From Oculina patagonica (taxonomy: Eukaryota), in assembly GCF_052425735.1 (NCBI RefSeq), contig NC_135760.1, positions 14,942,001-15,006,000 on the forward strand: a stretch of 64,000 bases of DNA, written 5' to 3'. Under the pieces are notes generated by a model that saw only the letters and a list, made by a program, of their open reading frames with translations, did no database searches and was not told the DNA's origin. Shown here piece after piece: positions 1 through 47,679 of this stretch (the first letter of the stretch is position 1; each line of letters begins with the position of its first letter). The position numbers and the translations under genes are program-made.

Positions 1-584
1 GCCGCAAACAAAGGATTCAATATCAGATGCAGATGAGTTCGCAGAATACAACGGAACATCGCAGAGCTTTGCAGGTTACAGCTATAAGCAAAATGAAGAC
101 AAGTTCTACAAAAGTTCTTCCAAACATGAAGACGAAAAGAGTGCATTTCCAGGAAGGAATGACTCGAGATCATTTACAGCTCAATTCGGTGAAAAGGAAA
201 CCAATGACATTCCAGAAAATGATTCCATTAAGAAGGCCCAAAAAGAAGAATCGCATAACAAAAAGCAGAAATCTTCTGATGAGCCCGACTACAAGGACGA
301 AATTGAGAAAGAAGCTGTTGAACAAGAAAAAGAAGCCGATAAAAAAGCTGAGGAAGAAGGAGGTCACCATGACAACGACGACGATGATGATGATGACGAC
401 GAAGATGACGACAGTGATGATGAAGATGACGATGATGAGCAGAATGATGAGGATGATGAGGAGTTAAAGGACGAGGGACACTCCGTGCATGATAACACTG
501 AGCAAAAGGACGACATTAACAATCCCGCTGAACAGTCTTTTGCCGTTTCACCCACAGTGGTACCGGGAATGTGTCCGCCATGTC
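1..584 (+). CDS. Exon: Asp/Glu-rich acidic region ending in MCPPC (frame +2)
   Basis: Frame from position 2 is open: [13 protein letters not shown]...[36 protein letters not shown]...VVPGMCPPC, then donor GTAAGT at 585. The listed ORF 27..467 is an off-frame reading. Confidence 0.85.
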
Positions 585-2891
585 GTAAGTAACACTTTAT
601 CGTTTTTAACAGTTTCGCGGCTTGATTAATCACCTAGTCCTCAGAAAGGATAATATCTCCTGATGTAATTGCTGATGTTGCAAACGGTTATCACAAGCAT
701 CCAAATCTTACCATGACTAAGATTGGACACGATAACTGAGAATAACAAAATTACAAATACAGAAATGAGCATAAAATAACTAACATCGACTGTCCCGAAG
801 AATGCAGGAAAATGACAAAGCGAAATAAACGAGAAAACTTACAAGACGAATGTGACGAATCCAAAACTTAAAAGACGAATTGGAAGCTATAAACTGGAAA
901 CTCAAAACCTAACTAACAGAATCAATAAATTACACGTCAACAGAAGATATACAAAATGCAAATGAATATGACATGTTAAAAAAGGCTACTAAACAAAGGA
1001 AACTAACTACACGAAAAATAACACGAAACTATGAAACTCTGTACGAACTATGAAATTCACGTACGAAAATTCTGGCGCCCACAATAGCGAAGTGCGCGAG
1101 GTCTAAAAATAGAATGCAAATGATGTAACCTCCACGAGGCTCAGAAAACATCAGCGTGTTATGAGAAAAATAGAAAGAATCTAGGCGAAGTTTTCGTTTG
1201 ATGAAAGTATTTTTATGGAACACCAGCTGTTTTAGAAAGTGTTTAGGAAAATCGTCCGCCATTTCGGTTTGTGTGTCTGAGTCTTGTCTGAGTCGTGACG
1301 CCACTCGCGCGCTTCGGTATTGCCAACTGCGGATTAAAGCCCGAAAACTTGCGTCTACTTGCGTCTCCGCTTGGCCAAGACTTGCGTACACTTGCGTTGC
1401 ATTTTATGTTGTATTTTCTATAATGTAATTCAGGAAGTTCATTTATGTGGCAGTTGCATTTGTTCAAAAAGGTAGTTACAAGAGCATCATAGTAGTGAGA
1501 AGCGAACCATTTACTCAACCTCGTTCCCAGGGCTTTTCCCTTGGTAATTTGGAACGGGCGGGAAAAGCCCTGGGAACGAGGTTGTTATTTACTATCATAG
1601 GACATAAAACCAGTACACAGTTGATATTTTAATTGGTCTTGCTCATTATTTCAAAACAGTAAAATATATTTCCTTTCTTTTTCTTCAGCCAAACCAACTA
1701 AAGCACAAGGTAAGAGGTCTAACACCAAAATACTGTCCATTCAAATAATTCTTAGAAATTAAGCTGGTATCGCAAAAGTGCATATAAAAGGTTTTTACTC
1801 AGTGAGAAACTTCTCATCTTAGAACTTAAACAACATTAAAAAAGATTCATTTTTTGCAAAAACTACTAAAATTGCAGCCAGGATTCGTGATTCAAGTCTG
1901 CAAAATGTTTGACACTGGCTTAGAATAACGTTAAGACATTCATCTGACCCTGAAATTAGATAATTGCAGCAGAAAGGAAGAGAAAGAAAAAAAAATACTA
2001 GTATTGATATTAGGACAGAAAAGTGGTGGTTATTTATCTTAAAATATAAAAATGCCAAAAAAAAGAAATATCTATTCGTATTAGTAATTTGCGCTATATT
2101 TTTTCCCTCCCCAGCTTGTAATGCAAAAATCGACCTAGCTATTCTAGTCGACGGGTCTTCAAGTGTGGAAAGGTACGGTGTCGGTAACTTCCGAAGGATT
2201 ATCGACTTTGTCCGAGGCCTAACGATGGGTTTCGCCATATCAAGAACTAACACCCGAGTATCCTTGACTGTCTACGGAACAAGACCGAGAATGATCTTCA
2301 ATTTCCGCAGGTTAGTTGCACGCAAAGCTGTCGTTATCAAACTGAACACGGCTTGAAACTGGCAAACGACAAATGATTTCCAGCTCTGAGTTTTTATTTT
2401 TGATGTATAACCGTGCTACTGCCTACAGCCGCGTTGCTTTACCAGGGCCTCTGTTGATAACAATTTTAAACATAAAACTGATAGGGTAGCCCCCCCCCCC
2501 CCCCCCCCCATTAAAATAAAGGCCTTTACTACTTTTTGTTTTGAGGAAGCAAGTAAGTGAAATGCCGGCGAACCTCATAAATAAATACGAAGATCGACAA
2601 GACCGCAAAGATAAGGCCCTGGTAAAAAATAAAAATTTCACAATGTTGAGTACACACATATATTTTAACGCGGTGGGGCTGTTTTTTTCTCTATATTTTT
2701 TTCTCTTTTCTCTATAACACCGCTTTACACCCTTTTTTTATCTTTTACAACACATTACACAGTCCCGGTGAAACTTTCTGGGGGAAAAAAACGCCGACTC
2801 TATATATAAAACGGGGATATTTTCTATATCTTAACTAAACACACGAAAAAAAAAAACAAACTAAACAAAAAAAAAAAAAAATAACCACCCC

Positions 2892-2960
<69 letters not shown>

Positions 2961-5900
2961 AAAAAAAAAAAAAAAAGTCGCAAGAAATATTACAAAGTAC
3001 CTAAAACGGAAGTTAAAGTATAAAAAGACTTCATTGAAAAGAAGTCGATACCAATTCTAAACTAGCCAGAACAATACATTTTATCATTTCAGATACCAGA
3101 GTAACCCGCAGTTGTTCACGGGTCTCAATCGTCCCATTAACTATCCACGAACGGGCGCAAGAACAGGCCGAGCGCTCAGCTACGCGTATAGAAGGCTTTT
3201 CAGCAGAAGTCGACGTTCACGTTCCAGGAAAGTTGTTGTGGTCATCACTGACGGCCGCTCCATTGATGACGTACATAGCGTCTCCAAGCGACTGAGATCT
3301 CGTGGCGTCACCATCTACTCAGTAGGGGTGGGAAGGTACTTTAACGCAAAGGAACTTGATTCCATGGCAACCGATCCCGACAAGACTCACGTTTTCACAT
3401 CGGATTTTAAGCAGTTGCAGTACATCACGAACGATCTCAAGAAAGCCATTTGCATGAGTAAGTGTTCACAAAGTCACAAAACGTTTGTCTCTGATTACTT
3501 TTACCTAAAGTTGTAACTTGATCCGGAACTTGTGAATTGTGTGGTGAAAAGTTAAATAAATGCCAGGCACTTTAATGAGCGAGGCATCGTGAAAGGGTAG
3601 CTTTTGAGATCTATGTAGATAAAAAAATGAGAAGGCTTGTTTATAGAGAACTCGCATTTAAAAAATTAAGGTAAAAAAGAGGAGAACACTTGCCACTGAA
3701 ACTTAGAAACTCTTTTACATCTTTTCTTGTGTCAATTTTCCCGCTTAAAAAAGTAAGTCCATACTAAATTAGCGGATATGCTGTTTTTATCCAACGATTA
3801 AATGAGTTATCATCTTCAACAAGGTTCAAAAGCCTTGCAGACACGTCGACGCGCTTTCTTTTTCTCTCTCATTATATTTTAAAACAAAAGAATCGTCACA
3901 GTAACGAAGTCTCCTGTTCTACAGGGCCCAGTTGTTAGGGTAGATAACGCTATCTGCTGGATAAATCACTATCCAGTGGATAGCGTAGTATGTTTTGTTA
4001 ACATTTTATCCAATGATTAGCGATTTATCTGCAGGATAGCGTTATCCGCCCTTCGAACAACTGGCCCCAGGAGTGCAAAGTATAACAATTTACTCGGATT
4101 AAGATGATTAAAAAAATTGTAGTACTATCACTGTTGTTTATTTTGACTTTTTTTTGTTCAGGTGCTGGTGGTACTCTTTCGATTTCTAAATTGCAGCCAT
4201 GTGTGTGTACTGGGCCTACCAAACCTGTTGGTCCAACCAAGCCAGGCGGTCCAACAACACCAGGTTTGATTAACTAGAATTTTTTATATACTAATTAAAC
4301 ATTTAAAAAATACTCATTCTATTTCAAGTCTTTGCTACGTTAACAGCGTTTTGCAATTTTAAGCTACCTTAAATCTACAGACTATCCAAAGATTACTCAA
4401 TCAAGTAACTTTTTCAGTTGCTCGATATATATTTTAGAGTCGTAGTAACGTAAGTCACTGACATAATCGTCATGATTCATTGTAGCATCAGGGAAGACAA
4501 CAAAGAAACCAGGAGGTCCAGGAGGCCCTGGGGGCCCCGGCGGTCCGGGAGGTCCCGGTGGTCCAGGAGGTCCCAATGGCCCAGGTGGCCCCGGTGGTCC
4601 GGGTGGTCCCGGAGGACCCGGGGGACCCAAGCCTGGTAAAACAACAAAACCAACTAAAGCTCCTCCAGGTAAGAACTAAACATATTAAGTTTAAATTACT
4701 TTGCTGTCGGATGTCACGAAGTTAAAATTGTTTCTATATTTCAACAGGTAAACCCGGTGGGCCGGGAGGTCCAGGAGGACCGGGTGGGCCCGGAGGTCCG
4801 GGTGGACCCGGGGGACCCGGAGGACCAAGCGGACCAGGAGGTCCAGGTGGTCCGGGCGGCCCGGGGGGACCCGGAGGACCGAAAACAACTCCGAAACCAG
4901 GAACAACAACAAAGCCTCCAGGTAAACCTGGGGGACCTGGCGGACCCGGAGGTCCAGGAGGTCCCGGTGGCCCAGGAGGCCCAGGTGGTCCTGGGGGACC
5001 AGGCGGACCAACAACTAAGAGGCCAGGTATGGTTGTGTTATTTCTTTTGAACAGCGTTTTAACACAACCTTATAAACGTTACGTTATTCGATATAACGTG
5101 TTGTTAATAAGCTATCCAGAAACCAAAAAAAATCAGAAATCAGAACAGAAAGGGATGTTCAGTTTCTTATACGATGAATTAGAACATCGCCCATCTTAGT
5201 GTATCATGAAGGGTGTCAATTCGTCATTATAAACTTGAAAATCTAAACAAGCCCTAAAAAAATCGAACGTCCTGTCAGACTTGTTTAGAATTTTTTAACA
5301 CTGATTCCAAAAACGTAATGAATATTGCAAATGCTTACAAAATAACCCTTGTCACAAGACTGGACAATCTCAGATGATATATTGATATGCATCAAAAACA
5401 CTTTCAAATTCCTTTTGAATGAAGGAGGTCAGTACAAATTCGAAAGTTCTGCCATGCATTCCAGTGGTATTTTAGTCTCCGTAGAAAAGCACATAAATTT
5501 AGGTACAGTGAATGTGAAATAAATCGCCAAATTTCAGTGTTATTGCGCATATTAAAAAATAACATTCTAAAAACGTTTTCTGTAAGCACAGTGTCACAGT
5601 TAGAATCCCGGAATATACTTCGTAGTCTCAGTTGAATGCTCGAAACTTTTAGACTTTCGAATTGTTGTCTTTATTACTGGAATTCTTCTTGCAGGTAAAT
5701 CCACAAGACCAACAAGACCAACTAAAAAAGCGCCGGGAACACCAGGTGGCCCTGGAGGACCAGGCGGTCCCGGCGGACCCGGAGGTCCAGGTGGTCCGGG
5801 GGGTCCAGGAGGTCCAGGAGGGCCCGGTGGGCCCGGCGGAAAGACAACACCACGTCCTGGAAAAACAACAAAGCCAACGAAACCCACAAAGAAACCAGGA

Positions 5901-8900
5901 ACTCCCGGAGGTCCGAGTGGACCGGGTGGTCCTGGCGGACCAGGAGGGCCTGGTGGTCCGGGAGGACCTGGTGGCCCCGGTGGCCCTGGGGGACCTGGAG
6001 GAAAAACGACACCACGTCCTGGGAAAACGACAAAGCCAACCAAACCAACAAAGAAACCGGGCACACCGGGAGGTCCAGGTGGTCCCAAGGGGCCTGGCGG
6101 GCCCGGAGGCCCGGGAGGTCCCGGAGGACCTGGAGGACCCGGTGGACCGGGAGGTCCTGGTGGTCCCGGAGGCCCAGGGGGTCCAGGAGGACCCGGTGGT
6201 CCCGGTGGGCCTACAACGAAATCTCCAAGAGTGCCAACCAAGAAAACCACACCAACTCCGTATGCCCCGGGTAAGCCTAATGGCCCAGGGGGACCAGGAG
6301 GTCCAGGGGGACCCGGCGGACCCGGTGGTCCGGGTGGACCAGGAGGGCCCGGTGGACCAGGAGGACCAGGAGGTAACGGAATACTTCTTGTTTTTGCTTT
6401 ATGTATCGCGTCATTTATGTATCATTGATGTATCGTTTAGGTATCAGCTGGACCAACTGAGAACGAGAATCGCCGAGATTTGAAGGACCAGAGTCATAGG
6501 CGTACGAGGCGGGGGGGGCGAGGGGGGCTGCAGCCCCCCCAGTGCCAAAATTTTTCGGGCAAAATGGTTAGAATTCGGGCAACAAGCCTAGGAAAAAAAT
6601 AGAAAATAAGCCGACAAATCTCAACATTATGTTCAAAACGAGTTACATCAACAGAAAAAGTATTGGAAATATACCGAACTTTGTGGTTCAAAAGTTATCT
6701 GCTTTTGTTTCCTCTCGAACATTGATCATGTTCGATTTTTCTCGCAAATTCTGCGTGATCCCTCAGTTTGTTTCAGTTTCAATCATTTTGAAGTGAGTGA
6801 AAAATTGGCGAGGGCGACCAGAAGTTAGGATTTTCCATTTTCCGCACGGTGGATCCAGTGTAAGACCTTAAAACAAAGTCGTTACAAATGCGATGAAGCT
6901 TATGCTTTTGACTCAAATGTAAGTTCTAAGGACTAGCTCAAAACTTTCGACGAAATTTTTTAACTCATTTACCCCTGAATTTCTCACACGCTTTTGTATT
7001 TCTCTCAAGTGGAGGAAAAACAATGTAAAATTGGCTCCCCAAAAATACCTTATTTTTTTTAACAAGAGTGAATAAATAAAATATTTCCGAAGAAAAATGA
7101 TTCAGTGCATTGGCATCTTCGGGCAATGCCACGAAATTAATTAAGAACTATCGTTTCCCTTAAGCAAGTAGGAAAAGTTTGTACACAATTATTTCAATGA
7201 ACGTTTTGTTGTCCGTTTTATATGCCTTTAAACGCATGTCATTTTTTTTTTCGGGCAGTTAGGTCTCCGCCCCCCTAGGGCTGAAGGTGCCCGTACGCCT
7301 ATGACCAGAGTTGCACTAGAGTTGTCTTCAACTCTAAGCGAGCGTAGATAAAACAAGATAAATTAAAACTCGCGACTTTTAATGAAAATTTGAACATGTT
7401 CTAATCGGATAAGAGCACAGTACAGTTGACGAGGTCGTGGAGAGCGCTTGAAAGTTTCAAGGAGCGTTATCTCTTTGTTGTTTGGCCAAGGCGTAAGCGA
7501 CGTTTCTTTCCAATTTCGCTTCCTTCATTTAGCAGAACTGATCTACTGATCTAAGTGCTCTTTTGTTTTTTTGAGTCTAATGCTTGCGTGCGCTTTGCGC
7601 ATGCGCATTAGACTCTTTGTTATATGAAAAAAAGCTGTTAGCAATCCCAAGGGAATGGTTCGGGATCGATAATTGTTCGCTGTAATGTAGAAAACAATGA
7701 TCAGCTGCAAGAACGGACTCCGTACGGACACGCACGATTAGTTTCAATTAAAAACAGCCAATCAGCGACACGTGTTCCCACGCATAATTAAAAGTTCTTT
7801 CTCAAGTCACGATTATTGAACACTTGAACAGGACGAAATAATTTTCCAGTTAAGACATTTGTAAGCTTTTTGTGAAAATAAATCTTCGTTTTCAGTTCAG
7901 TTAAGCACTTGTGTTTTCGTCTTGCTTAAAAAGCAAGACGTCTTTGAGAAAAAATATTTCGACGGCGACTCGCGTTTATTTACACAATGCGACCAAATAT
8001 TTATTTTGTTTTAAAAAATAGAAAACTTTACCTCGGTTTTTGTATTTAAGTCATTCGAATTTTGACCAATTTTTTCTTTACAGTGTAAACAAAAACCTTC
8101 AAAAATAAAAGATGTACATGGATAAATGTAAATCAAGTTACGCGACTAAATCAAAATGCGTTTGTTTGGCCGCTTTGCAGTATTACACTGTCCCGGCCTT
8201 TGCCATACACTGAAATCGAATTTCATGCTTTTACGACTCTCAGAGATCTTAAGTTCTTCTTACAGCTAGAAAAATCATAAAATGGTTACATTGATATGGA
8301 AGTGATGATTCGCGAAATTTGTACATCATGATAAATAGTCTTCGCTCCTGTGTATGGTAGCTCGATAATAATTGCCTAGTTTCCAGCGTTCAAAAGGTCA
8401 TCATTATATTGACGTGAGCATTTACACCCGTTTTTAGGAAAATCTGTCACTAAGTGCTTACAGTACAATGGAGTAACAGTCACTATTTCAAGTGCTTTTA
8501 TTGCAAAATCTGTTTCAAGAGTCATCATCAAAATGGTGAAAAATCTGAAAGAAAACGATGTGAAGTTCTTCAACCCTTGTTGTAATGAACATGCTTTTTG
8601 TAAATCGTCACGCAATCTTGTCCAAATGTTTAATCGTTTCTGCTTTTACGGACAATACGGAAGAAGTAACATCAACTCCTGTTCATACTTTAAATTTTGT
8701 GAAGCATATAACATTTATGACTGTTTCGTTTTCATCCATAATCATCCACGATGCCCCTAGCTTGCTATAAGCATTTTAAATTAAACTCCCGAACACAAAC
8801 CTCTAACCAATTTTAACCGGCTTACGAAAACCGCGCAATCTGTATCACTATGCCATACGGCATTAGACTCATGTCACCCTTGGTGACCTATTTTTTTTAA

Positions 8901-11900
8901 GTGTATCGCCATTACTAAACGTTTGAATGACAGTTTGCTGTTGAAGACAACATTTATTTTAACACTGCTCACACATTGAAAAGCGCGTTCTAACCTCTGG
9001 TTACTTCTGATGAGCTTTGTTATAGCAACGCTCACAACAATAATTAAATAGAATTGAGGCTATGCGTAGGATAATATAATAATTTATGTAACACTTTTTT
9101 ATCATCCTTAACAGTTTTCGTGTAAATCTTTGCTATGTACTAGTAGTAACAAACAGAGTTGAACCAACCTGTCCATACTCTTTCGCCATTCTAGGCGATA
9201 TTAGAAATTCACATTATAAAATTTTCAATAACGAGGAAATTTGTTTCTATAATCTTTCAGGACCGGGTGGACCAGGTGGTCCCGGAGGTCCAGGTGGTCC
9301 GTATGGTCCCACGACAAAGAAGCCAGGTAAACCAGGAGGGCCTGGGGGTCCTGGAGGTCCAGGGGGACCAGGCGGACCTACAACAAAACCCCCCGGTAAA
9401 CCAGGAGGGCCAGGAAAACCGGGTGGTCCCGGTGGCCCCGGAGGACCCGGCGGTCCAGGAGGCCCAGGAGGTCCCGGTGGCCCCGGGGGTCCAAATGGTC
9501 CTAAAACCACAACACCACGACCGGGTGTACCAACGAAGAAGCCAACGACTAGAAAGCCGGGATCACCAGGAGGGCCCGGTGGTCCTGGAGGCCCCGGAGG
9601 ACCAGGCGGTCCGGGTGGACCGGGTATGTCACATATCTGTTGATTGTATATTGCTTTACATATTGTCATGATATCACGTGTACAATGCGCTACACTCAGT
9701 AAATTGCATTCCGAAACCTTCCACCAATATATTTTTCATATATTTAGGAGGAGGTATAATTGATTCGATGCTTTTCGGCTTTTTTCTATGATTTCAAAAC
9801 GCAAAAACCCTCTAAATAGTTGTGAAATCGTGGTTGAAATCATGACGTACTTTTTTTATGGGTAACTTCACACGGCAGGGGTATTTTGCAGAACGCATAA
9901 CGCAGAATGATGGTCAGCGGTTTGCGTGCGGTAAGCTTTCACTCCAGTTTGCTTGCGGTTAGCTTTTATTTGTTGGTTAGGGCATTATACTATCGCTGTT
10001 CCGTCACCACATTCTGCGCTCTGGGTTCTGTGTTCTGCATTCTGTATTTTACATTCTGCCTTCGGCAAAATATTATTCAATATTTCCGCCGTGAAAACAG
10101 TTACTATTGCTCGTAACCTTCCTTGACCTGAATTAGACCAATACCCTGTTTAAATCCAAGGAACACAGGGTAATGGTCCATAAAGAAAGTTACTACTTAA
10201 CCAGAACTAGGAGTTGCAGAACTAATCAGCCCGATTACCATGGTTTAAACTAGAAATCAGCATAAGAGAGGTGAAAGATAGGTTACTTCAATGGATATAA
10301 ATGTATTGTTGTGAATAAAACCCTGCTATTGTCATGTCAAACAGGTGGACCGAGCGGTCCGGGAGGCCCCAGTGGACCCGGCGGTCCTACGACTGCGAGA
10401 CCCGGTGTCCCAACTAAACCAACCAAGCCAACAAAGAAACCGGGTAAGCCGGGTGGTCCAGGTGGTCCTGGTGGACCCGGTGGTCCAGGAGGACCCGGAG
10501 GCCCTGGTGGTCCGGGTGGTCCAGGAGGCCCCGGTGGACCCGGTGGATCTACAACTGCCAAACCCGGTGTACCAACTAAATCAACCAAGCCAACAAAGAA
10601 ACCCGGTACTCCAGGTGGACCCGCAGGCCCTGGAGGTCCCGGGGGACCCGGCGGCCCCGGCGGGCCTGGAGGCCCCGGTGGACCCGGCGGACCCACAACT
10701 GCTAAACCCGGTTTACCAACAAAACCAACCAAGCCTACAAAGAAACCGGGTACTCCTGGTGGTCCAGGAGGTCCAAAAGGACCCGGTGGACCGGCAGGCC
10801 CCGGAGGTCCAGGAGGACCCGGTGGCCCCGGCGGGCCTGGAGGCCCCGGTGGACCAGGAGGGCCAGGTATGGTTTATGTTTACTTTAAAATTTTATAACG
10901 GTTTTTGAAAGGTCAACATCAATCCGCGAGCTTTGAGTCTTACATGAAACTTGATCGTATCAGAAGCAAATAGAATTAAGTGTGTTCATAATAAAAATTT
11001 TGGTTTGTATCTGGTCTTAAAATCGGTTTAAAAAAGTTGGTAAAAAAGTATAAACTGAATTTTTGGTAACTCTCTGTTACCTTCATCAGAGTTAAAATTG
11101 GTTCAGTTTTTGCATTATAAGTTTTTATACACCGCCGGTCTCTAGGGATGTTCCCAATGTTAAATAAACTTGTGGGAAATGCACATGCTCATTCACACAG
11201 TTAATGTCCTGGATAGAATGTAGCGCTTCTAGGAATAGGCGTTGTTGCCTATTGTTGACATTTCGTTGAAGGTAAAAATGAAAACTTTCTTAAAAGCATT
11301 TGAGATTGCAGTTAATATATACAATGCTAAAATACTTGCAAGAAAATGAGTAATCAGATAAGGAGTTCGCTATCATTAACTTCTATGGAACACCACAATC
11401 TGTTTAAATATCACAAAATTAAGTCTAAAACGAAATTACTGTCTTTTTAATCCAATAGCGCAAAGTCAAAACTTGTTTAGAGATCGTTTAAATTACCGAC
11501 AAAAACTCTGTTACCTTATGAAAATGTGGCTGAAAGTTTAAATTCGCACAATGCAAAAGGTTTACATAAGAACTACACAGTCTAAAGGCGCTTTCAATTT
11601 GTCAGGACTGGCCGGCCGATCCGGTGATTTTGAATGTGAAATGGGCCTTTCCCAGGGGATTTTCCCACAAATCCACTACAACTGTATAATATTTATGCAT
11701 TGAACGATTCGACAGGACCTATCTGACTAACAACGGAATTCTGTTCTCGAATTTACCGGTCTGGCAACCTGTAAGCGACAAGTTTATCCTTATAAGCATT
11801 CGGTGATCAACTTAAAAATTTGAGTTTGGTGCTGCAGTATCGACAAGAATACGTGTCAGTTACTACTTGGGGCTTGGGATTAACAGGGATTGTGTTTGAT

Positions 11901-14900
11901 TCCTTGTTATAAGGTGGACCTGGAGGACCTCCAGCAGGACAACCAACAACACCAGTGACAAAGCCACCGGGTACCCCAGGGGGCCCCGGAGGTCCAGGGG
12001 GACCTGGCGGACCAGGAGGTCCGGGAGGACCCGGGGGACCCGGAGGACCAACAGGGCCAACGAAGCCAACGAAACCCCCTGGTAAACCCGGGGGTCCAGG
12101 TGGACCAGGAGGGCCCGGTGGTCCGGGAGGTCCGGCGGGACCAACAACAAAGCCACCAGGAAAACCCGGCGGACCAGGGGGACCTGGAGGACCAGGAGGC
12201 CCGGGAGGTCCTAGTGGCCCAGGAGGACCCACAACAAAACGACCAGGAACTCCAGGTAATGATGGACAAAACAAGGTCTCAATATAACAGTATTAGAAGG
12301 AACGTCGGAGGTATAGAGTTTGGTATAGCATATGTCTTGTATGTTTAGCATATAGCACTGGTGAGCAACAAGAAGCGTGGGCTTATAAGAAACGAAAGCT
12401 GCAAGTTGTGACATAATTATATCAAAGGAAAAATCAGGAAAACAAACCTGGTATCGATCTAGACAAAATAATAGGCCATTTCCGAGTTGCTATTTTCCTC
12501 TGTGTCACAACGAGTCTTTTTGTCAGCTGTCTTGTGAGGCCATTAATGTGGAAATGAGTATCACCAACACGTTTTGCACGAGGCTCTTTAAAAATAGAAA
12601 CAAAAGGCAACTAGGAAATTGCCTATTGGAAACCTCAAATGTCAGCTCCAAGTCAAGGAAATTTGCTGTGCGTTAGACTTCAGCTGAGGTACTTGTATTG
12701 CTTTCTTGGGCGAGACACTTAACTCTCAGAGTGGTTCTTCCTACCCAGGGATATAAATGGGGATTTACGAACCGTTAGGGCATGCAACGTGACAAAATGG
12801 TAGTGGTTACCTGCGATAGACTCGCATATGCCTACCCTTAGCCGATCGACATTACTTTGTCTCTGGAAAGGCTTTACTTATTTTGTACATAGCATTGAAC
12901 ATAATTTTTATTATTCAGGTGGCCCAGGAGGTCCCGGTGGCCCGGGAGGACCCGGAGGACCGGGAGGCCCAGGAGGTCCAGGGGGACCCGGCGGTCCTAC
13001 CACTAAACGACCGGGATCACCAGGAGGTCCCGGCGGTCCCGGAGGGCCTACTACAAAACCAAAACCAGGAAAACCCGGAGGGCCTGGAGGCCCGGGTGGA
13101 CCAGGAGGTCCAGGGGGACCCGGAGGTCCCGGCGGACCAGGAGGGCCTGGAGGACCAACTACGAAACCTTCAAAACCAGGACAGCCCAAGACGACACCCA
13201 CGACTAAGAAACCAGGAAAACCAGGAGGTCCGGGAGCTCCTGGGGGACCGGGAGGTCCAGGAGGACCCGGGGGTCCAGGAGGCCCGGGAGGCCCGGGTGG
13301 GCCTGGAGGACCAGGCGGCCCCAAGACAACAAAACCAGTTCCTGGAGTGACAACGAAACCAACCAAGAAACCAGGGACACCCGGCGGACCGGGAGGTCCA
13401 GGGGGACCAGGAGGCCCAGGTGGGCCGGGAGGACCCGGCGGCCCCGGCGGACCTGGTGGACCCAAGACAAAACCTCCTGGTACTATAACCAAGCCGACCA
13501 AGTATGCACCCGGAAATCCAGGCGGTCCCGGGGGACCGGGCGGACCAGGAGGCCCTGGGGGACCCGGAGGACCCGGTGGACCTGGAGGGCCACCCAAGAC
13601 TACTCCTAAAACACCTAAGACACCAGCACCAGGTTAGTGCAGATAATATGGCAAAATAGGTGAAAAATATTTGATATAAAAAAGTCAAATAATATTCAGC
13701 AGCGTTATCCTTTCTCCTTCGTCATTACTATTGTATTCATAACAGTATTGTATTGCTATTGTATTGCTATTATAATCACATCTCTTTTTAAGATAGATGT
13801 CCACTTAAACATGTTTTTTTTTAAGATGTTGCCCTATTTCAGCCAAATCAATCTGTGACAGCAATCTTTAAATGTATGCCGACGAAAATATGAAAAATAG
13901 CGCCTGAAGATGCAAATAATGGTTGCATGCGCTTCTTGTTCAAAAATCCAAAGCATGATATGGTTGATTGACGGGCAACCATGAGTTGAAATATAAAACA
14001 TAAACTGCTTAACTAGCTTTTTCTTAACTGAATCGAATGTTTCCTTTTTGAAAAGCCGAAAGCACAGTTAAAATCCTACACCATTTTATCCGTTCAACCA
14101 AGAATGGTTAATCGCACTTTAGCTTTGTGGTCAGTCATTTACAAAAAACTTAAAGTTTGTTGTCACGAGCCGATTTTCATTACTCAGCTCATGATCAGAG
14201 CCTTGGTTTGAGCCTTGCTCGAAGTTGGTTGAAAAATTAAAATCCCAAAGCGACATTACGTGTGATTAAAAACGTAAAATATTAAACTAACTAATAAACA
14301 GGTGCCCCATGAGGGATTTTGCTATCACTGATGTGTGATTTATTATCTTACAGGCAAACCTGGTGGACCTGGCGGGCCAGGTGGCCCCGGAGGACCAGGG
14401 GGACCAACCACAAAGCGACCAGGAACCCCAGGGGGACCAGGAGGACCTGGTGGTCCCGGTGGTCCGGGTGGACCCGGAGGTCCAGGCGGCCCCGGTGGTC
14501 CAGGCGGTCCAACAAAGAAACCTGGAAAGCCTGGGAAAAAAACTACAACTAAACCCCCGGGAGTACCCGGTGGCCCAGCAGGTCCGGGTGGCCCCGGAGG
14601 TCCAGGAGGCCCGGGAGGTCCAGGAGGTCCTGGTGGACCCGGGGGGCCAGGGGGACCCAGTGGTCCTACAACTGCTCCCCCAGGGAAACCCGGCGGACCT
14701 GGAGGTCCCGGAGGACCAGGAGGTCCCGGTGGTCCTGGTGGTCCGGGAGGTCCAAAAACATCTCCACCCGGGAAACCGGGTGGCCCAGGAGGACCGGGTG
14801 GGCCCGGAGGTCCTGGAGGCCCTGGAGGACCCGGTGGACCCGGAGGTCCCGGATGTGTTATGAAGCCGACGGTACCAGGAGCAAAAACTACACCGAAAAT

Positions 14901-17900
14901 TGGTCCAACAAAACCTGGAGCTGCCACGCCAACAACTGGAAAACCATGTATCACGATTCCACCAGGTGACCTGATGATAAAGCTTATAGCAAAGTGAAAG
15001 CTTGCTATCTATCATTTGATTGTATCGTGTTTATATTATAAGCATGTAATAAAACTTGCCACTAACTGTAGCAGTCTATTGTTTCTGCTGTTCTTAAGAT
15101 ATTCTCCTTGCCTAACAAGTATTATTGTTGCTTGTCAGTCTTAACTGCCAGGGTCCCATTACCTGTTACTAGGAAATTTCAGCAAACCATTGCCTTTTCA
15201 ACCTTGTCTTTTAAATTTGGAAAGTAGCATAGTTGTTTACGCACATCAGTAATATATTCTCATAATCATTATTTTAAGAACTGCTGTCGTTTTATGATTA
15301 AGGTTTTACCGTTGTAAGGAAACCAACAACTGTTCCCACGCGGCCAACTGGACCATCAGGACCCACTAAAAGGCCTGCTGCTACAACCTCACCCAGTAAA
15401 GGTATTGATCTGTTCAATCTTCTGACGAATTTTTTTTGTTTGAGGTGACTTACTTATACCGAGCAGACTTAGCAGAGCCGTGCAATCAAATTCAGTATGT
15501 GTGAGCGTGCACCATACGCCGATAGTGTGAGCAAATCGCTTTGCCAGAAATTTTTCCCCTTGCGTGAGTTTTGAGAGCTACATAAATCCATTGGTTCATG
15601 CTTTTAGCTGTGCACTATCGAGTTATGGTGTAAGCAGGAAATTTGGAAAATACTCAGGAAGTTAAAATATTGCGTTCCAAAGTTTGGCGGTGAAACTTAA
15701 CATATATGGGTTGAAATTAAAGTTAAAGATGCTGAACTCTGATGAAGGTGTAAAGTCACCGAAAATTTAGGTTGTAAAAAAACAGATCGGCTTAAAAAAC
15801 CGTTTCATTTCATAAATGTCCTGCACCGATCGCCATACTGGTTCCTGAGTTTTAAAAAATTAATATAGTATAAATATGTATTTAAATGTACTGTAGACAT
15901 CTCGAAGGGTACTAAACAATTTTTCTCTTATTCTGAACACAGTGTGCAAAGCAAAGATGGATATTGCATTCGTGATCGACACAGGCAGTGGTGTCAAGAA
16001 AATCTTCAGCGGTATAAAGAAATTCTTCCTAGAACTGGTCGACTCCTTTACCATTTCAAGCCAGAACGTCCGGGTTGGTTTGATTGAGGACTCATACCGT
16101 CCTCAAGTCAAGTTTAGCTTCGGTCAGTACAACAGTCCTAGACAGATTAAACGCGTTGTTCAACTGTTACAGCCAAAAGGCGGAGCTAGACGGACAGGAA
16201 AGGCATTAAAACTCGCATCAAAACGCCTCTTTCCCGCCAGCAAGGGAAAGAAAACGTTAATTGTACTGACCGCGGGAAAATCTTTCGACCCAGTGCTTGG
16301 TCCGGTACAACAGCTAGCTGCTATGGGAGTCGATATCTTCAGTGTTGGCGTGGGGCCTGGTGCTAGTCGCAGTGAGGTTCTTACTGTGGCTAAAGATCCT
16401 CAGCACGCGTACGAGACAAACTTCAAAGGCCTGGGGACTATAGTGAAACGAGTTAAGGACAAAGCATGCGCAGGTTTGTTCATCTTCAATGGTATTGTGA
16501 TAATGTTAAAGTGGAAAATCAGACAACGCAACTTAGCTTCACTATATTAAAATTCATTACCCTTAATCTCAATAAACGTACATTAACTGCACTGTCCAAC
16601 AGAGACAAACACAAATTTAAGCATACTAAAATCAGTCAATCAGAATGTGTAATGGCCGGTCCCCGGCATGACTTCTACGTTTTGGAATGGGTGAAGTTTT
16701 CTTAACTGTTTAGACACTGTTATGGCTAAAAATTTAACTATTTAAAACATTTTTTAAATTTGATTTCATCATTATCTTTTTGCTGTTTTGAGCTGTATCA
16801 CCGAAGTTCTGAAATAAATCTCTCGTCGAAAAAGCTTGTCCTGGGTACTTCTCTATTATAAACCACTTCGCATTTTGTGGTATTTTTATGATTAAATATC
16901 ACGCTCAGAAAACTTCATATTATGTTAAGTTCTGTCTTTTATACTAAATTGACCCTTTTTATTTTTATCACAGAGGCAGGAGGCAGTCCACAGAGACCGA
17001 AAAAGCCAACTAAACGGCCAAGTAAGTAATTAACAAATGTAATTAATATGAAATTAAAAAAAAGTTTTAATAAATTAATTTCATTAATACCCTAAAATGT
17101 AGCGTACTGTTAGTATGTTACAACTAGCATCTCGGGACTACTAGCACGAAACGACTTTACGTAATTTTCTGTCAGTTCAGCAAGATCAAAAGAGAATCAT
17201 TGGGACGCCAAAAGACAATTTGATGTCAAATTTTCGCCGACATTTAAAATCCACTGACTGCGAAACACATCGTCTTTGCCAATTAGTTATTTTAACCCTA
17301 CTGGCAGCATGCAATTTCATCCCTTATTTACATCGTGTTGCTAATTGTAAACATCTGTTCTCAAACCAGAACCACCGAAAGCTGTAGCCATCTTCCCTCT
17401 AAACAAACGAGCTCGGGGTAAAGACATCGGTCCCTTGAAAAACAGCCCAGGAATTCTGTACAATGTTCGACCCGCCCCAGGACCAAACGGCCAACCTGGT
17501 GGAGCTGTCAAGTTCCCTAAATACAAGACAGGCTACGTTGAGTTCCCCAACAGAGGAAAACTGGATACTAAAAATTCCATAACCGTGATCGCCTGGGTAA
17601 AGCCGGACGGACCGGGAAAAATCGTCGAGTACAAGCCAAGAGGTGTGACGTTTGGCATTCGTTCGCCGGATACTCTGTATGTTCGTTTTACTCGCCGAAA
17701 CGGACGGCCAACCAAAACTGTCAAAACAAGGCGACGAGGAGTAACTCTTCGAAAGTGGAATTACATCGCAGTTACGTACGATCAGCGGACCGGGACTGGA
17801 ACCATTTGGCGAAATTCTCGCCCCGTTGCCTTCCAAAAACTTGGTTGGATTAGACTGGCCACAAAGAATGCGCTGAGACTGGGCGGGGCTACTCGCGGCC

Positions 17901-20900
17901 GGCGTCCATTCAAAGGCAGTATCACGTGTCTTCAGGTCTACAGCGATGCTTTGACTGGACCTCAGATCAAGAACGTACAGAACGTCTGCTTCAGACCAGG
18001 TAATAATAATCATGTTGAACCTGAATCTTACTCACAGCATGGTAGACTAGATCGATGGGAGAATTGCTTTTTATCTGAAGTCTCATAAGCCAAACCTTTA
18101 ATATCCTCCTATCTGGTTATGTACTACAAAAAGAACATTTTATTTCTACGTTTAACTGACGGTAACATCATGGGAAGTAAGGCATCAAAATAACTTCAAG
18201 GAGTTATTTACAAAAAGGCAATTTTTACGGAAGCATAATAAGAAAACTCACAAGACAGTTAGATACATAGAGTTCAGTCGCATATATTAGTTGCTGTAAA
18301 TTGAGAAGCTAGTTTCTCTTTATATCCAGAGTTCTTGGCTACAATTTACCAAGGTCGGGTGTATTGTTAATTTTGCTTAATCAACAGACTTGGACCATCC
18401 TTAAAATATTACGAAATCGATCGTGGGTAAAAAAAAAATTGACTGTTTTATTGGTAAAGATATAAACTAAGACAACTTTGTTCTGCATGGTTTGAAGTTT
18501 AGCTGACGAGGCTCTTGTATTTTCAGGTCAACCGACTCCCACACGTCCTCCTACACGCCCTGCTCCAGGTAAGATGAAAGCTTAACTCCGTTCTAAATAT
18601 AGCACTTAAAGATTACTTACAAAACGTTTCACTGCCAATACGGTCAAGAACTAACATTGCAGTCAGACTATGCTTTTAAAGATAAAGTATGTAATTAACC
18701 ACAGGCCGCGCGGAGATTTTGTCATGACTTAAAACAATACGACAATAGCTGAAAGTCAAGGTAAAATATTTTGGTAATTTGAATACTTTTCCTATTTGCA
18801 CCCGATAAGGAAAGGTACCATAGAAATCACAACAGATATTCGACACGTCTAAATATTTTTTTTGACCAGCGTTTAACTGAGTATCGGGGTGATTTTAAAA
18901 ACAATTTTATGTTGTATTTTCCCAGCGTTACCGCCTGCAATGGCATTCTTCCCGCTAACATCCAAATATGGTCCACGAGACATAAGTCCCACCAAAAACC
19001 TCCCAGGAAAAATCGTTGGCGCATTACCAGACAAAGGACCCGACGGCCAACCAGGCAACTCGTTCAAGTTCCGAGGTCGTCCCGACAGCTTCATCGAGTT
19101 TCCGAACAACGGCCGACTAGATACGAAGGATTCTATAACGATTCTTGCGTATGTCAATCCTGAATCGGCTGGACCCATCTTCAACTACAATCCAAAAGGA
19201 TTCGGAATGCATTTCTGGATGGTTCGTCCCAACGTTCTGTTCGCTCGCTTTGTGAAAAGGTCCAAAAAATTCACAAGGCCCGTAGCTACGAACAGAGTTA
19301 AGCCAAGAACCTGGAATTGGGTGGCGGCTACATACGATAAGAACACCGGATACGCGCGACTGTACGTGGATTCCAGAATATCAGCTGAGAGAAACATTGG
19401 CAGAATAAAACTTGCTACTAACTACCCTGTGAGGATGGGCGCGCGCATTGGAGACAGGAGATTTTTCCGCGGGAAAATCACGTGCGTTCAGGTGTACAAC
19501 GTGGCGCTGACGAGCCGACAGATCCGTGCTGCTAGAAAGAATTGCTTCAGACCAGGTTTGTTAAGTTAAACTAATGACATCTTTTTTATCTCGTTTGCCC
19601 TTACATATTTAAAAAGTTTGTAAAAATTGGTGTTTAATTTTGGGTGGTATAATTCTACTCGAATTCTATTACATTCTATTACAAGTGGAATGTTATCGTT
19701 CATCATACAATTTTAACTAATAGGAATTCATCGTTCGTTTGAAAAGTTTTCCAATCTTTTTTAAAAGGAATGTATTGATTTATATTCAAGTTATTTTAAA
19801 TGGGTTAATCATGCGTAAAAAAATTTAATATCATTTTGAATAAAACAGAAAAAATGAAAAAAAAAATGAAAAAATGAAAAAACTCTTTAGCGACCCCTGT
19901 GGCTTCAGCTAATCATGTGACTAAATTATTACTATGCCTACCCTGTTTTAGGAAGAAGCACGCCAACCAAACCAGTGCCAGCTCCTACCAAGCCCACTCC
20001 TGGTAAGTCTTTTCCCCTATGCTTCTATTGCTTGTTCAGTTATATGCAAATAACTCTTAGCAATCAAAAAGCAACATGATTTTCGCTACAAAGGGAAGTC
20101 TTTGAGTACTTCTTCTAGATGATGTTCATCAAAAGCAATTAATTTTTTTTGTTTTTCTTTTCATTTCGAACAGCTATCCGTAACTTGGTAGCCGTGTACC
20201 CACTAGACGCTACTTCCGGTGCACGTGACATAAGCCCAACCAAAAACCTCCCAGGGAAACTTTCGGGTGTAAGCATCGTCCCAGGCCCCGACAGACAGCC
20301 GAACACTGCGCTGCGATTCTCAGGCAGTCCTAGCAGTTACATTGAGTTTCCAAACAATGGGAGACTGGACACCAGACGTTCGATCACAATCTTGACGTGG
20401 TTGTTCAATGAAGGGAGGGGTGGACCAGTATTCGAGTACAACCCCAAGGGTCAAGGAGTTGGATTGAGGATCAAGGGCGCGAATAAACTTGAAGCGCGCA
20501 TTATCAGTCGAAGAAGAACAAAAAATATCCCTGTTACTACCCCAAAGAAGGTCTTCAAGCCCAGAACCTGGACGTACGTTGGCTTCACTTATGACTACAC
20601 CTCTGGCATTGTGACGGTTTATGTAAATGCAAAGCCAGTCGTTAAAAGGGTTGTTGGTCGAGTTGAGCTTCTTACAAACAAACCGGCGCGATCTGGATCC
20701 AAAAAGCGTGGAATTCGATTCTTCCGTGGGCGCTTGTCGTGTATACAGGTTTATAGCAGGGCCTTGACTGTTAGTGAGATCATAACTGCGAGGACAAGAT
20801 GCTTCAAAGGAGGTATGGTGCTCCTAATAGTCTGCTATCACTTTTCACGAATTCATCTCCTCATCCAAAAGGCTGGTGGGCTCTTTCTGAGTTAAAGGTT

Positions 20901-23900: not shown

Positions 23901-26900
23901 TTGGTCTTCCAAACAGCTACGTTGAAATTCCGAACAACGGCAAGCTACGTACATCAAACGCCATCTCCATGTTCGCTTGGATTAAACCCGAAGGACCCGC
24001 AGGTCCGATCATTAACTACAACAGAGGGCCTGCTTGGGAGACCCATCTATGGATCACAAACCCCAAAACGCTATTTGTTCGTTACGTGAAGGTAGGCGGT
24101 GCCCCTACTCCTCCAGTTACCAAGGCAACTCTAAAACAAAAGGCGTGGAACTTTGTCGGTACGACATACGATGGAATATATGCGACGTTGTGGGTGAATG
24201 GCAAAAAAGTGGCCTCGCGGAAGATCGGAAGTATTCGGCTGTCAACGATTGGACCGATTAGGATCGGAGCTAAGATCGGCGATGCTCGTAACTTCAAGGG
24301 AGCCGTCGCCTGCGTACAGCTTTATCGAGTGGCTTTACAGAAGAAACAAATACAGAGAGCAATGAAACGATGTATTAGACGTGAGTACCGTATTTCAATC
24401 GATGAGTCGTAATTAAGGAATGTTAACAAGAAGTAGAGTACATTAAACAAAATGTTTTGCTTGGAATTTGTCACCTTAGAGCAGTTTTCAATTGAGTGTC
24501 GTAAAACCAAAACCAAAGTAATTACTCTGGCCAATCACAAAGGACACAGACAATCCAGTGAACCAATCAAAACGCGAAGCAAATACATGTAGCTGGTACG
24601 AAGCGCGGGAAAACGTGCGCACGCGAGTCACGATTGGTTTTGGTTTTAGTTCTGATTGGCTGAGAAAGTGGCGCGAAATTTTTAAACAAATCACTAAGCG
24701 TAGAAATGCAAAACCAAAGCAAACGAAATTAACTTTCAACACTCAAGTGAAAACCGCTCTAATACAAGTTTAATAATTCACTTCTTGCTTACACTCATTT
24801 TTCCCCCTCCCCCTCCCCCATTTCCACCTTATTTATATTGTTAACACTCTAGTTGGTTCATGTTTCCGAAATCTAACGAGTAGTCTTCGAGTAGTCATTG
24901 GTATTCTCTGATCCCTGAGATTTAAAACGACTCAAACGTAGCACTTTTTAAAAGTTGACTAATTGTTATTCTTTTAAACTCAGGTCGTCCGCCTAAACCC
25001 GTGGTACCTCGTACCACTCCACCTCCGCCACCACCAACTCCGGCTCCTTCACGTAAGTTAAAATGTCTTCTTCGTCTTTTTGTGCTAACGGGTTTGACGA
25101 ACAGCAAGTACTGATTAAGCCTTACTGGGCAGTTCAGTCTTATTCCAACGTTCTCGGCCGATTTCTGAAAAATGCAACGGAAAAATGCTGCGAAGCGCAT
25201 TTTTTCAAATCTGTTAGCGCCTTCAGAGTTACTTAAGGTAACGCGCAGGACCCTTGCTCATTAATAAATTCATTAGCCAAATTTCTTGACGGAGTGCTAT
25301 CTTGTAAAGCTTTAATTTGCTAGATTTTGAACATCGATTCCTCTAAAATTTATCAAGGATATTAAGGGATGATGGAATTACATCATGATTGTCCTTTTAC
25401 TGACAGATGACCGTTTACTGTAATGTTACAGGCTCTTAAAAGTTTAACTGCAGATATTGCGATTTTGTGTCCAAGTTTTCAGCTACAATAGCGCACCGAA
25501 TTAGAAGATTATATAAACTAGTGATGAATCATAACCTATTTTGTGTTATGACAAGAACGAAATTTTAGATTTCAAAAACTGCTAGAAGTTATCTGCTTCT
25601 AAGAGAGTAAAAATGTGAAAACTAAACTTTGAAAAGTGCTATCTTCAACTTGAGAACGAAATTTCAAAATTCGCTCTTGTCATAACACAATAGAGTGCAC
25701 CAAGTTCATGTTCCTCGCGAATCAACTCCTGAAATTCTATATCGGCGGAGAAAACTTGGACACAAAATTGCAGGATTTTCCGCTTCCGAAGACCTTTCGA
25801 GTCAATGTTTACAACCGTCTTGTGCTATAGTTCGCAGCTGTGAATCTAATTATGATAATTCGCTTTGTTTAAGCGCACGGTACGCAAAGCGGAGAACAAT
25901 ACCGTCTAATTACTCGTACAAAGAACTTTAAGAAAAACATTCTCATGAATATTTCGTTTGTTGTCGGCTTCAGTCGTCGCAGTTCGTGCATACTCTTTAA
26001 ATAAATACATACATAATGATTTCAAGGGTCCTGCGCGACCTTAATTCACCGAGTTGTTGTAATTGCTTCTCTTCGTTGGGTAGAATGCGTTAAACTTCAT
26101 TTCAGTGAGGAATGATTTTGACTAAACAACTAGCTAATCAATTGTGCGGTATGTTAAAGGAGGTTACTAGATAAATCTAAGATGAGAGACAAAACGAAGG
26201 AGGACAAGTAGATCAATATACAATACATAGGAATATTTTGGACAGTCTCCACCCAGGCTTAGCGGGCTATTATTCAACATTATTTTTTTCCAGAAAAGCG
26301 CGAAGCGCTAGACACTCAAGGGGGTTAGGGTAAAATATGATCTGCCTCTCACTGGCACATGGTGAGCGTCTGGTATTTCGCGCTTAACCGCAAAGATCAA
26401 GCACAATAATCCCAAAATCTGTTTTTACATTACATAGAGGGTCTGGATGGGGGGGGGGGGGGGTACAAAATGTCAGTTGTCATTTAAAATTGTGGCCATT
26501 TATCAGTTGTCAGTTAACCCTATCCAGACCCTCTACATAGACCGTTTAAACAAGATCACGTGGGTGATCACGTGCTCGATCTGCTATTGTAGTCAATAAT
26601 TAAATGCAATTCGAGTGTCCGCATTCGTGTGTGCAGCCCGGCTAGCTCAGTCGGTAGAGCATGAGACTCTTAATCTCAGGGTCGTGGGTTCGAGCCCCAC
26701 GTTGGGCGCAATTTTTTTTGAAATAAACAGGAGAACCTTTTTATTATTGCACTTTTATCGTATTATTTTTATATTTTTCCACAGTACCTCCCAAAACAGT
26801 TGTTATGTACCCATTTAACAAGCGGTACAGAGGAATTGAAAAACTTGGAAGGAATCCGCCCGCCTTCTTGAGTAGAGTACGACTGGCGCCTGGGCCCGAC

Positions 26901-47679: not shown

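Follow-up and report, generated by a model that had tools for sequence, protein, structure and literature searches.

VWA domains, a concanavalin A (ConA)-like (TSPN/LamG) domain and Gly at every third residue are found together in the VWA-bearing collagens (type VI and the FACIT types XII, XIV and XXI), the FACIT vocabulary being a VWA plus a LamG/TSPN-type domain plus collagen. By analogy, very large, secreted, Lys/Arg-rich proteins with lectin- or VWA-type modules are also known among marine adhesives such as flatworm Mlig-ap1, sandcastle-worm cement and sea-star Sfp1. In the matrisome of Nematostella, secreted proteins of cnidocytes and mesoglea combine VWA with WSC (NvvWFA-WSC), with a ConA-like/LamG lectin domain (NvvWFAConA-1 to -4, one auto-named "trichohyalin") or with a Gly-rich region (NvvWFAGGP), and several of these are listed as cnidocyte-specific (PMC12549020). 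Here we describe a giant gene in a 64,000-nucleotide stretch of the coral Oculina patagonica genome (NC_135760.1, positions 14,942,001 to 15,006,000, forward strand; hereafter the window), the protein of which is nearest in kind, among published proteins compared by description, to the Nematostella mosaics. None of those is described with all of these modules plus a (GGP)n core, poly(Arg-Pro), an Arg-rich helix and a charge near +950.

The gene spans about 48 kb and is real, expressed and conserved. Its 55 rebuilt exons, from position 2 to 47679 of the plus strand (Table 1), form one open frame of 17,034 nt encoding 5,677 amino acids, and the TAA at 47677-47679 is the sole stop of the spliced chain. 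The introns comprise 54 of the GT-AG type and one GC-AG, and nearly all exons are phase 1-1 by splice-site scoring, the acceptor leaving 2 bases before the first full codon and the donor 1 after the last. Mini-exons were added from RNA joints, a composition-filtered search and conservation, and a few were probably missed. A previous sequence-only reading of the window had proposed 58 exons and more than 5,700 amino acids in one frame; the single frame and its end coordinate were recovered exactly, the exon and residue counts came out slightly lower, and its figures are plausible given the mini-exons probably missed. Because phase 1-1 exons chain in frame even over gene boundaries, frame continuity is on its own insufficient proof of a single gene, and independent evidence of unity was therefore sought. 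We consider it likely that the locus is a single plus-strand gene, starting upstream of the window and ending at 47679 with at least 55 exons in the window, and that it encodes one secreted protein of ~6,000 amino acids serving as an extracellular structural or adhesive scaffold. The domain order, stated with the same degree of confidence, is a signal peptide and acidic region (upstream), an acidic poly-Asp exon, VWA1, a (GGP)n core with T/K/P spacers, VWA2, nine LamG domains with P/T/R linkers, VWA3, VWA4, seven WSC-fold repeats with poly(Arg-Pro) linkers, a 344-aa Arg-rich helical domain and LamG10. The single large modular protein of the earlier reading, with its domain order and counts, is supported, and it is probably secreted.

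RNA contigs from four runs of two closely related organisms show GT..AG joints leading from GGP exon G8 (..14965) through 15303-15401, VWA2 (15943-16473), 16974-17021, LamG1, 18527-18568 and LamG2 to 19952.., so that splicing connects the GGP core with the VWA/LamG part. Within this spliced stretch, RNA depth in the introns is 0 except for a pile-up at 15494-15692. Run X1 contains 0.37 and 0.38 of the words sampled in two separate 10-kb stretches, where the exon fractions are 0.41 and 0.45, in line with co-expression of the two. At the 3' end, a cDNA contig of a related coral (L004) runs from the Arg-rich domain through the Lys-rich mini-exon, exon X and LamG10 to the short terminal exon, followed by the stop and 1 kb of 3' untranslated region. 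In an Orbicella RefSeq fragment (predicted model P0179), VWA4, RP linker 1 and repeat W1 are joined exactly as in the rebuilt chain. Junction-spanning RNA, which the sequence-only reading had named as one check for a single transcript, thus joins the GGP core, VWA2, LamG1 and LamG2 in four runs, with the 3' end added by the L004 cDNA. The remaining junctions are inferred from phase compatibility, short introns holding linker mini-exons, the lack of an internal start or terminal exon, and conserved exon order, which together suggest a single gene.

The intron pile-up at 15494-15692, between the linker exon and VWA2, is present in contigs of all four runs, with many loose ends that differ from one another at 15590-15630, and has the appearance of a dispersed repeat transcribed elsewhere and not of an exon of the giant gene. 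In the runs of one of the two organisms ("organism B"), the joint at the LamG1 start lies 8 nt inside the exon (17378 versus 17370), with 8 differing letters between, which is an exon-start sequence change in a sister taxon or a divergent allele, about 4% diverged.

Pfam confirms both the four VWA and the ten LamG-like domains of the sequence-only reading. The VWA domains (PF00092) score 39-106 bits with E values of 1e-9 to 3e-30 (cut-off 23.8 bits), and VWA1 and VWA3 are each divided over two exons by a phase-2 intron. The DxSxS MIDAS motif is kept in VWA1 (DGSSS) only, the corresponding residues being DTGSG in VWA2, ESGGI in VWA3 and DASVN in VWA4; many genuine VWA domains are without the motif. 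Ten exons or exon pairs match Laminin_G_3/ConA-like (PF13385) at 46.8-68.9 bits, with E values of 4e-12 to 7e-19 (cut-off 27.6 bits). Among the LamG exons LamG4 is the only one that is split, by a phase-0 intron (22049/22588) with the GC donor CAG/GCAAGT.

The seven W repeats did not reach the Pfam cut-off for WSC (PF01822, 27.8 bits); two of the seven gave any match, the best with an E value of 0.013, and no other Pfam family was matched. An hhalign comparison of a W repeat with two canonical WSC domains gave an E value of 0.018 and a probability of 2.5%, and a PDB sequence search with W-repeat profiles returned nothing useful. Two Cys and two Gly are invariant over 19 copies from the window and three relatives (four species), and the eight canonical WSC cysteines, which form four disulfides, are not kept, two of the eight remaining. 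The AlphaFold2 model of a W repeat is confident (pLDDT 92.1, pTM 0.80), and its best PDB matches are the Kremen WSC and the yeast Wsc1 sensor domain with TM scores of 0.64-0.71, PAN/apple modules scoring lower. Among the top 20 matches almost all are WSC, and the helix Cys and strand Cys of the W repeat align with two WSC cysteines. Against the AFDB Swiss-Prot set the matches are mostly annotated WSC proteins, including Kremen, Wsck, WSCD1, yeast Wsc2, Wsc3 and Slg1, and fungal WSC-domain proteins. Because the model is confident and WSC proteins dominate the structural matches, the seven two-Cys repeats are assigned as WSC-fold domains with two of the eight canonical cysteines, and not as WSC members by the Pfam criterion. 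The seven "WSC-like" repeats proposed earlier therefore hold at the level of the fold, though below the Pfam threshold, and they differ from WSC domains further by an Arg+Lys content of 28-38%. The number of repeats varies by species: the window (37391-43828) and L007 (11300-18750) have seven each in one-to-one correspondence, L006 (11400-14500) has three that are W4-, W5- and W7-like, and in L002 a W2-like copy immediately precedes the Arg-rich exon.

The modules of the protein are of extracellular types, and the sequence that follows its acidic head is extremely positively charged. The net charge of the in-window protein is about +947, and about +950 after the acidic N-terminal region, and every module after acidic exon A0 is basic, with pI values of 10.2-12 for the VWA domains and 10.8-12 for LamG1-9. 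Database fragments that are single-exon LamG orthologues are just as basic, whereas the multi-domain paralogues of hemichordates, amphioxus and Nematostella are not. The Arg-rich exon encodes 344 residues, 37% of them Arg, with no Asp, Glu, Pro or Cys. Its alignment with orthologues of four other species is essentially free of indels, with about 70 invariant positions, many of them hydrophobic. Three very long helices are predicted (pLDDT 88) with a packing that is not confident (pTM 0.41), and a hydrophobic periodicity test of the exon gave no amphipathic or heptad signal above shuffles. A search of the ESM Atlas for relatives of the exon returned chance-level matches only, at most 0.68. Protamines are short nuclear sperm proteins, tens of residues long, made of Arg clusters. 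The name "protamine-like domain", given in the sequence-only reading, fits the composition (about 37% Arg, as in protamines and protamine-like sperm proteins) and nothing else, as this is a 344-aa domain inside a secreted protein, spliced in frame to LamG10 in cDNA, of conserved length and position-specific conservation, and predicted to be all-helical.

The window start falls inside acidic exon A0. In the relative L005, the acidic exon reaches about 95 codons further upstream to a phase-1 acceptor, and about 0.7 kb upstream of it lies a signal-peptide exon (MIFSLLLRGTLLLLVVNHSVAQ) that opens with M-IFSLLLRGTLLLLVVNHSVAQ and ends in a phase-compatible phase-1 donor, with a transporter-like gene upstream of it. 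The signal-peptide exon and acidic exon of L005 carry a charge of about -93 over 584 residues. To the concern that no signal peptide might lie upstream, raised in the earlier reading, this exon gives an answer for the relative but not for the present genome. Cnidocyst proteins often have short propeptides ending in Lys-Arg. The L005 signal-peptide exon (L005:8294-9190) has two dibasic sites soon after the signal peptide, ...SFLEKR/E and ...VRQKR/D, which may be due to chance, with 24 basic residues in 299.

The assembly gap within the gene, an N run at 37975-38103, has intron sequence to either side. The W1 exon ends at 37839 with AG/GTTAGT in phase 1, followed by 135 nt of AT-rich non-coding sequence up to the gap, and 53 nt of pyrimidine-rich sequence 3' of the gap leads to a cag/G acceptor at 38157, also in phase 1. 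Since the donor and acceptor phases match, the frame is kept over the gap. The gap-free L007 has an identical exon set from VWA4 to W2 (RP linker, W1, long RP exon, short RP exon), and neither the flanks nor this comparison gave a sign of a hidden or lost exon.

Exon order is one-to-one in four relatives (L005, L006, L007 and L002). L005 covers the signal-peptide exon, acidic exon, VWA1 and G1-G7, L007 extends from LamG5 as far as the Arg-rich exon and includes the full set of seven W repeats, and L006 covers LamG8 to LamG10 with three W repeats. Values of dN/dS were 0-0.27 for all exon classes, the low-complexity ones included, the ratios being rough where dS exceeds 1 and is saturated. These values point to purifying selection on the gene in several stony corals. 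One orthologous exon shares 78% identity with a protein of Orbicella faveolata, and a more distant orthologue is present in Acropora digitifera, which places the window in a stony coral. A phmmer search with LamG7 against 1.84 billion representative proteins found no full-length or multi-LamG orthologue; the matches were exon-sized fragments on short contigs, 53-87% identical, and unrelated mosaic proteins, all long matches being <45% identical, non-basic and without GGP or RP. The Nematostella matches P0012 and P0031 are paralogues and are not basic. The orthologous Orbicella model has 266 residues and is named "collagen alpha-1(XXI) chain-like", and the acidic exon orthologue in Acropora is named "ribosome production factor 1", as the sequence-only reading had anticipated in stating that automated annotation would probably split the gene or label it collagen. 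Public annotation holds the gene only as small mislabelled fragments.

From its modules, the protein is most likely a secreted extracellular structural or adhesive scaffold. Once secreted, as proposed, its VWA domains could multimerise the protein or dock it onto other matrix proteins, and the LamG and WSC-fold domains could bind glycans or proteins. The Gly/Pro core would be a long flexible tether, probably hydroxylated and glycosylated; each Pro is in the X-Pro-Gly context recognised by prolyl hydroxylases, and the spacers, rich in Thr, resemble sites of O-glycosylation. Polyanions would be bound electrostatically by the RP rods and by the Arg-rich helix, and the ~600 acidic N-terminal residues may be a built-in counter-ion with which the polycation is condensed during secretion or packaging. 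Oppositely charged parts might likewise suggest, by analogy with the marine adhesives, a coacervate-like packaging; no sequence relationship with those adhesives was found, and DOPA-type or phosphoserine motifs are not evident in the giant protein. Roles as a gland-cell adhesive, in mucus binding or antimicrobial defence, in the mesoglea or in relation to the skeleton are all possible.

Several points count against the single-gene scaffold. The signal peptide was observed only in L005, at a place upstream of the window start. RNA covers part of the transcript, and the junctions A0 to VWA1 to G1, those between the GGP exons, those from LamG3 through LamG9 to VWA3 and VWA4, and those from W1 through W7 to the Arg-rich exon are predicted from phase, spacing, conservation and the lack of internal starts. 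An open frame through phase 1-1 exons is weak proof of unity, and skipping of such exons could yield shorter isoforms. AlphaFold tends to give helices for Arg/Ala/Leu-rich sequence, and the pTM of the Arg-rich domain is low. Cell type, secretion, modification and binding partners, that is, every functional step, are inference.

A more specific version of the scaffold or adhesive reading places the protein in the cnidocyst. It would make up either the basic, strongly eosin-staining material that fills the spirocyst tubule or the tubule's adhesive microfibrils, stored together with a polyanion and discharged to form an elastic web that sticks. To our knowledge, the molecular make-up of spirocysts is essentially unknown. 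In the coral Lophelia, the spirocyst tubule content is "highly eosinophilic" and the most eosin-binding among cnidae, and this filling is deposited as spirocysts develop, adheres to glass once discharged and forms adhesive microfibrils (PMC5363355); a protein with a charge of about +950 would bind eosin. Coral acidophilic granular gland cells, however, are stained by eosin as well. The cnidocyte-specific table of the Nematostella matrisome lists a vWFA+WSC protein, vWFA+ConA-lectin proteins and a vWFA Gly-rich protein, and vWFA paralogues differ between nematocytes and spirocytes (PMC12549020). The auto-name "trichohyalin" of one vWFA+ConA protein hints at a charged helical stretch. These likenesses are drawn from descriptions of the proteins. 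The position of each GGP Pro in X-Pro-Gly and the block size of 3-14 triplets recall minicollagens, but the pattern of the minicollagen Cys-rich domains (CxxxCxxxCxxxCxxxCC) is absent from the 5,677-aa model. Published in situ primers for Astrangia markers of spirocytes, nematocytes and gland cells had no match in the window; for the spirocyte marker this says little, as it is from another species and possibly another gene. No protein of this kind came up in literature searches on Gly-Gly-Pro repeats, the proteome of spirocysts, markers of spirocytes, and trichohyalin in cnidocytes. Of the conceivable sites of action the spirocyst is the most attractive candidate, though a tentative one. A bolder proposal makes the protein the principal component filling the spirocyst tubule and the substance of the eosin-binding adhesive microfibrils of this hexacoral-specific organelle: a giant polycation, kept condensed either by a polyanion or by the acidic head it carries itself, that would unfold on discharge into an elastic sticky web. 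This must be rated unlikely.

The GGP core has 1,231 residues (45% Gly, 31% Pro, 9.5% Thr, 8.4% Lys, no Asp or Glu, 2 Cys), with 29 runs of (GGP)3-14 and spacers between them. As (GGP)n is formally Gly-X-Y and the protein shares the FACIT vocabulary, the core could be a true collagen, a triple helix of Gly-Gly-Hyp triplets, and the protein a cnidarian relative of the VWA-bearing collagens of VI or FACIT type and not an elastomer; the NCBI label on the Orbicella fragment appears to agree. That label derives from the VWA domain alone, however, and Pfam Collagen (PF01391) has no match at E<=1 in three GGP exons. The blocks are interrupted by T/K/P spacers of 8-30 residues in which the Gly register is lost, and no trimerisation or NC1-type domains are present. 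Host-guest peptide work ranks Gly, whether at X or at Y, with the residues that least stabilise the triple helix. The protein also differs from the VWA-bearing collagens in its domain order, and a collagenous core is improbable. Elastomeric proteins extend reversibly as networks that are disordered, cross-linked and rich in Gly and Pro. The likeness to elastomeric Gly/Pro proteins (flagelliform silk GPGGX, elastin, Hydra cnidoin) lies in the 76% Gly+Pro and in the long, repetitive, Cys-poor region, whereas the bare tripeptide unit, the Lys/Thr/Pro spacers and the lack of hydrophobic residues are different. "Elastomeric", the word used in the sequence-only reading, would apply only as a description of composition.

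The locus might instead be two or more neighbouring genes, such as acidic-VWA-GGP-VWA-LamG and VWA-VWA-WSC-Arg-LamG, that appear continuous only through their phase 1-1 exons, which chain in frame wherever gene boundaries fall. The junctions LamG9 to VWA3 and W7 to the Arg-rich exon have no RNA support in this analysis, and the 3' stretch has about twice the word share of the middle stretch in most RNA runs. This difference fits a 3' bias on an mRNA of about 18 kb, however, and the only class boundary that could be tested, GGP to VWA2 to LamG, is spliced. No signal-peptide-like start and no terminal exon was found within 1-48000, aside from one spurious frame, and no long non-coding spacer separates the modules; the candidate boundaries are ordinary introns of 0.6-1.1 kb containing linker mini-exons, and order and spacing are unchanged in three relatives. 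The spurious frame, at 4104, resembles a signal peptide but corresponds to the pyrimidine tract of the linker exon starting at 4162, and its Met is absent in L005. Separate genes are therefore very improbable. Least credible is the idea of a precursor or carrier of cationic antimicrobial or mucus-structuring peptides, with Arg-Pro linkers freed by proteolysis at the coral surface, for although the eight runs of (RP)3 or longer in the model resemble the proline-arginine-rich antimicrobial peptides Bac7 and PR-39 and the whole protein is extremely cationic, the RP exons that join the W repeats are short linkers between folded domains under purifying selection, and no defined processing sites stand out among basic pairs found throughout the sequence.

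As a single-gene scaffold, this is a modular matrix protein notable for its size, for the charge shift of the whole protein and for two elements without described counterparts, and few extracellular proteins described from cnidarians would match it in size or charge. Its matrix and lectin modules are of familiar kinds but all shifted to pI 10-12, and they are joined to three unusual elements, the (GGP)n region free of acidic residues, the poly(Arg-Pro) rods and the Arg-rich helix without recognisable relatives. Because public sets hold exon-sized, misnamed pieces, the gene is invisible to coral proteomics, single-cell atlases and differential-expression studies, and a correct full-length model would allow such data sets to be re-read. 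The protein is a candidate for the basic secretory materials of corals, such as the spirocyst filling, adhesive or gland secretions and partners for the acidic matrix of the skeleton. It also provides a natural template for biomaterials of polyampholyte or coacervate type.

Table 1. Exons of the giant gene and the assembly gap in the window.
Feature	Position	Strand	Evidence or remark
Acidic exon A0, cut by window start	2..584	+	Net charge -44, poly-Asp run; donor C/GTAAGT, phase 1; orthologues 43-81% identical
VWA1 first half, DxSxS MIDAS motif kept	2115..2310	+	Pfam VWA E 1.2e-9
VWA1 second half	3093..3457	+	Pfam VWA E 5e-23; phase-2 intron splits domain
Linker exon (...GPTTPG)	4162..4263	+	Conserved in L005
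GGP exon G1	4486..4668	+	98% aa identity in L005
GGP exon G2	4748..5026	+	dN 0, dS 0.51 versus L005
GGP exon G3	5695..6372	+	Frame, phase, composition, dN/dS
GGP exon G4	9261..9623	+	Frame, phase, composition, dN/dS
GGP exon G5	10345..10866	+	Frame, phase, composition
GGP exon G6	11914..12255	+	Frame, phase, composition, dN/dS
GGP exon G7	12919..13632	+	Frame, phase, composition, dN/dS
GGP exon G8, 3' end spliced to next exon	14354..14965	+	RNA joint 14965/15303 in 3 runs
P/T-rich linker exon	15303..15401	+	RNA joints both sides
VWA2	15943..16473	+	Pfam E 5e-27; RNA joints
Linker exon	16974..17021	+	RNA joints
LamG1 (Laminin_G_3)	17370..17999	+	Pfam E 7e-19; RNA joints
Linker exon	18527..18568	+	RNA joints
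LamG2	18926..19555	+	Pfam E 3e-17; RNA joints
Linker exon	19952..20002	+	RNA joint 19555/19952
LamG3	20174..20812	+	Pfam E 1e-16
Linker exon (predicted)	21456..21485	+	Composition-filtered search
LamG4 first part, GC-AG donor CAG/GCAAGT	21574..22049	+	Pfam E 2e-12
LamG4 second part	22588..22753	+	Exon chain
Linker exon (predicted)	23125..23157	+	Composition-filtered search
LamG5	23754..24380	+	Pfam E 6e-18
Linker exon (predicted)	24984..25052	+	Composition-filtered search
LamG6	26785..27423	+	Pfam E 8e-16; 81% in L007
Linker exon	28175..28228	+	Conserved in L007
LamG7	28768..29418	+	Pfam E 2e-16
Linker exon (predicted)	29888..29932	+	Conservation
LamG8	30180..30818	+	Pfam E 3e-18
P/R/T linker exon (predicted)	31483..31545	+	Frame, phase
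LamG9	32295..32927	+	Pfam E 8e-18
Linker exon (predicted)	33738..33779	+	Composition-filtered search
VWA3 first half	34040..34211	+	80-82% in L006 and L007
VWA3 second half	34839..35188	+	Pfam E 1e-16
Linker exon (predicted)	35597..35629	+	Composition-filtered search
VWA4	36233..36760	+	Pfam E 3e-30; orthologues 63-94% identical
RP linker exon 1 (RP1)	37391..37435	+	VWA4-RP1-W1 joined in Orbicella model P0179
WSC-like repeat W1	37576..37839	+	Repeat alignment, fold model
Assembly gap in W1-RP2 intron	37975..38103	.	N run
RP linker exon 2	38157..38273	+	Acceptor after gap; L007 counterpart
RP linker exon 3	38437..38478	+	L007 counterpart
WSC-like repeat W2	38584..38838	+	Repeat alignment
RP linker exon 4	39358..39423	+	Frame, phase
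WSC-like repeat W3	39870..40130	+	Repeat alignment
RP linker exon 5	40574..40678	+	Frame, phase
WSC-like repeat W4	41075..41335	+	Repeat alignment
RP stretch fused to WSC-like repeat W5	41799..42125	+	Repeat alignment
WSC-like repeat W6	42638..42937	+	Repeat alignment
WSC-like repeat W7	43517..43828	+	Repeat alignment
Arg-rich exon, 344 aa	44571..45602	+	In frame with LamG10 in cDNA L004
Lys-rich mini-exon	45960..46034	+	Counterpart in cDNA L004
Exon X, N-terminal part of LamG10	46304..46495	+	cDNA L004
LamG10	46827..47306	+	Pfam E 4e-12; cDNA L004
Terminal exon, stop TAA 47677-47679	47639..47679	+	Same ending in cDNA L004

Two conserved intron blocks, tried as mini-exons, turned out to be tRNA-Lys genes. 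These two tRNA-Lys(CUU) genes (26636-26709 and 27955-28028, plus strand) lie in the introns to either side of LamG6 and share the strand of the giant gene, and L007 has a counterpart of the tRNA-like block between LamG6 and LamG7 (L007:1900-1962). Their host gene is unusually rich in Lys and Arg codons, which may be a coincidence. Downstream of the giant gene, three plus-strand exons (51266-52006, 55404-56096 and 61069-61701) encode two SUEL/rhamnose-binding lectin domains each. A Pro/Ala/Lys-rich exon lies at 56588-57397, and a Ser/Thr-rich open frame of >670 residues (61989-63998) runs off the window. Together these look like one or more separate lectin/mucin-like genes.

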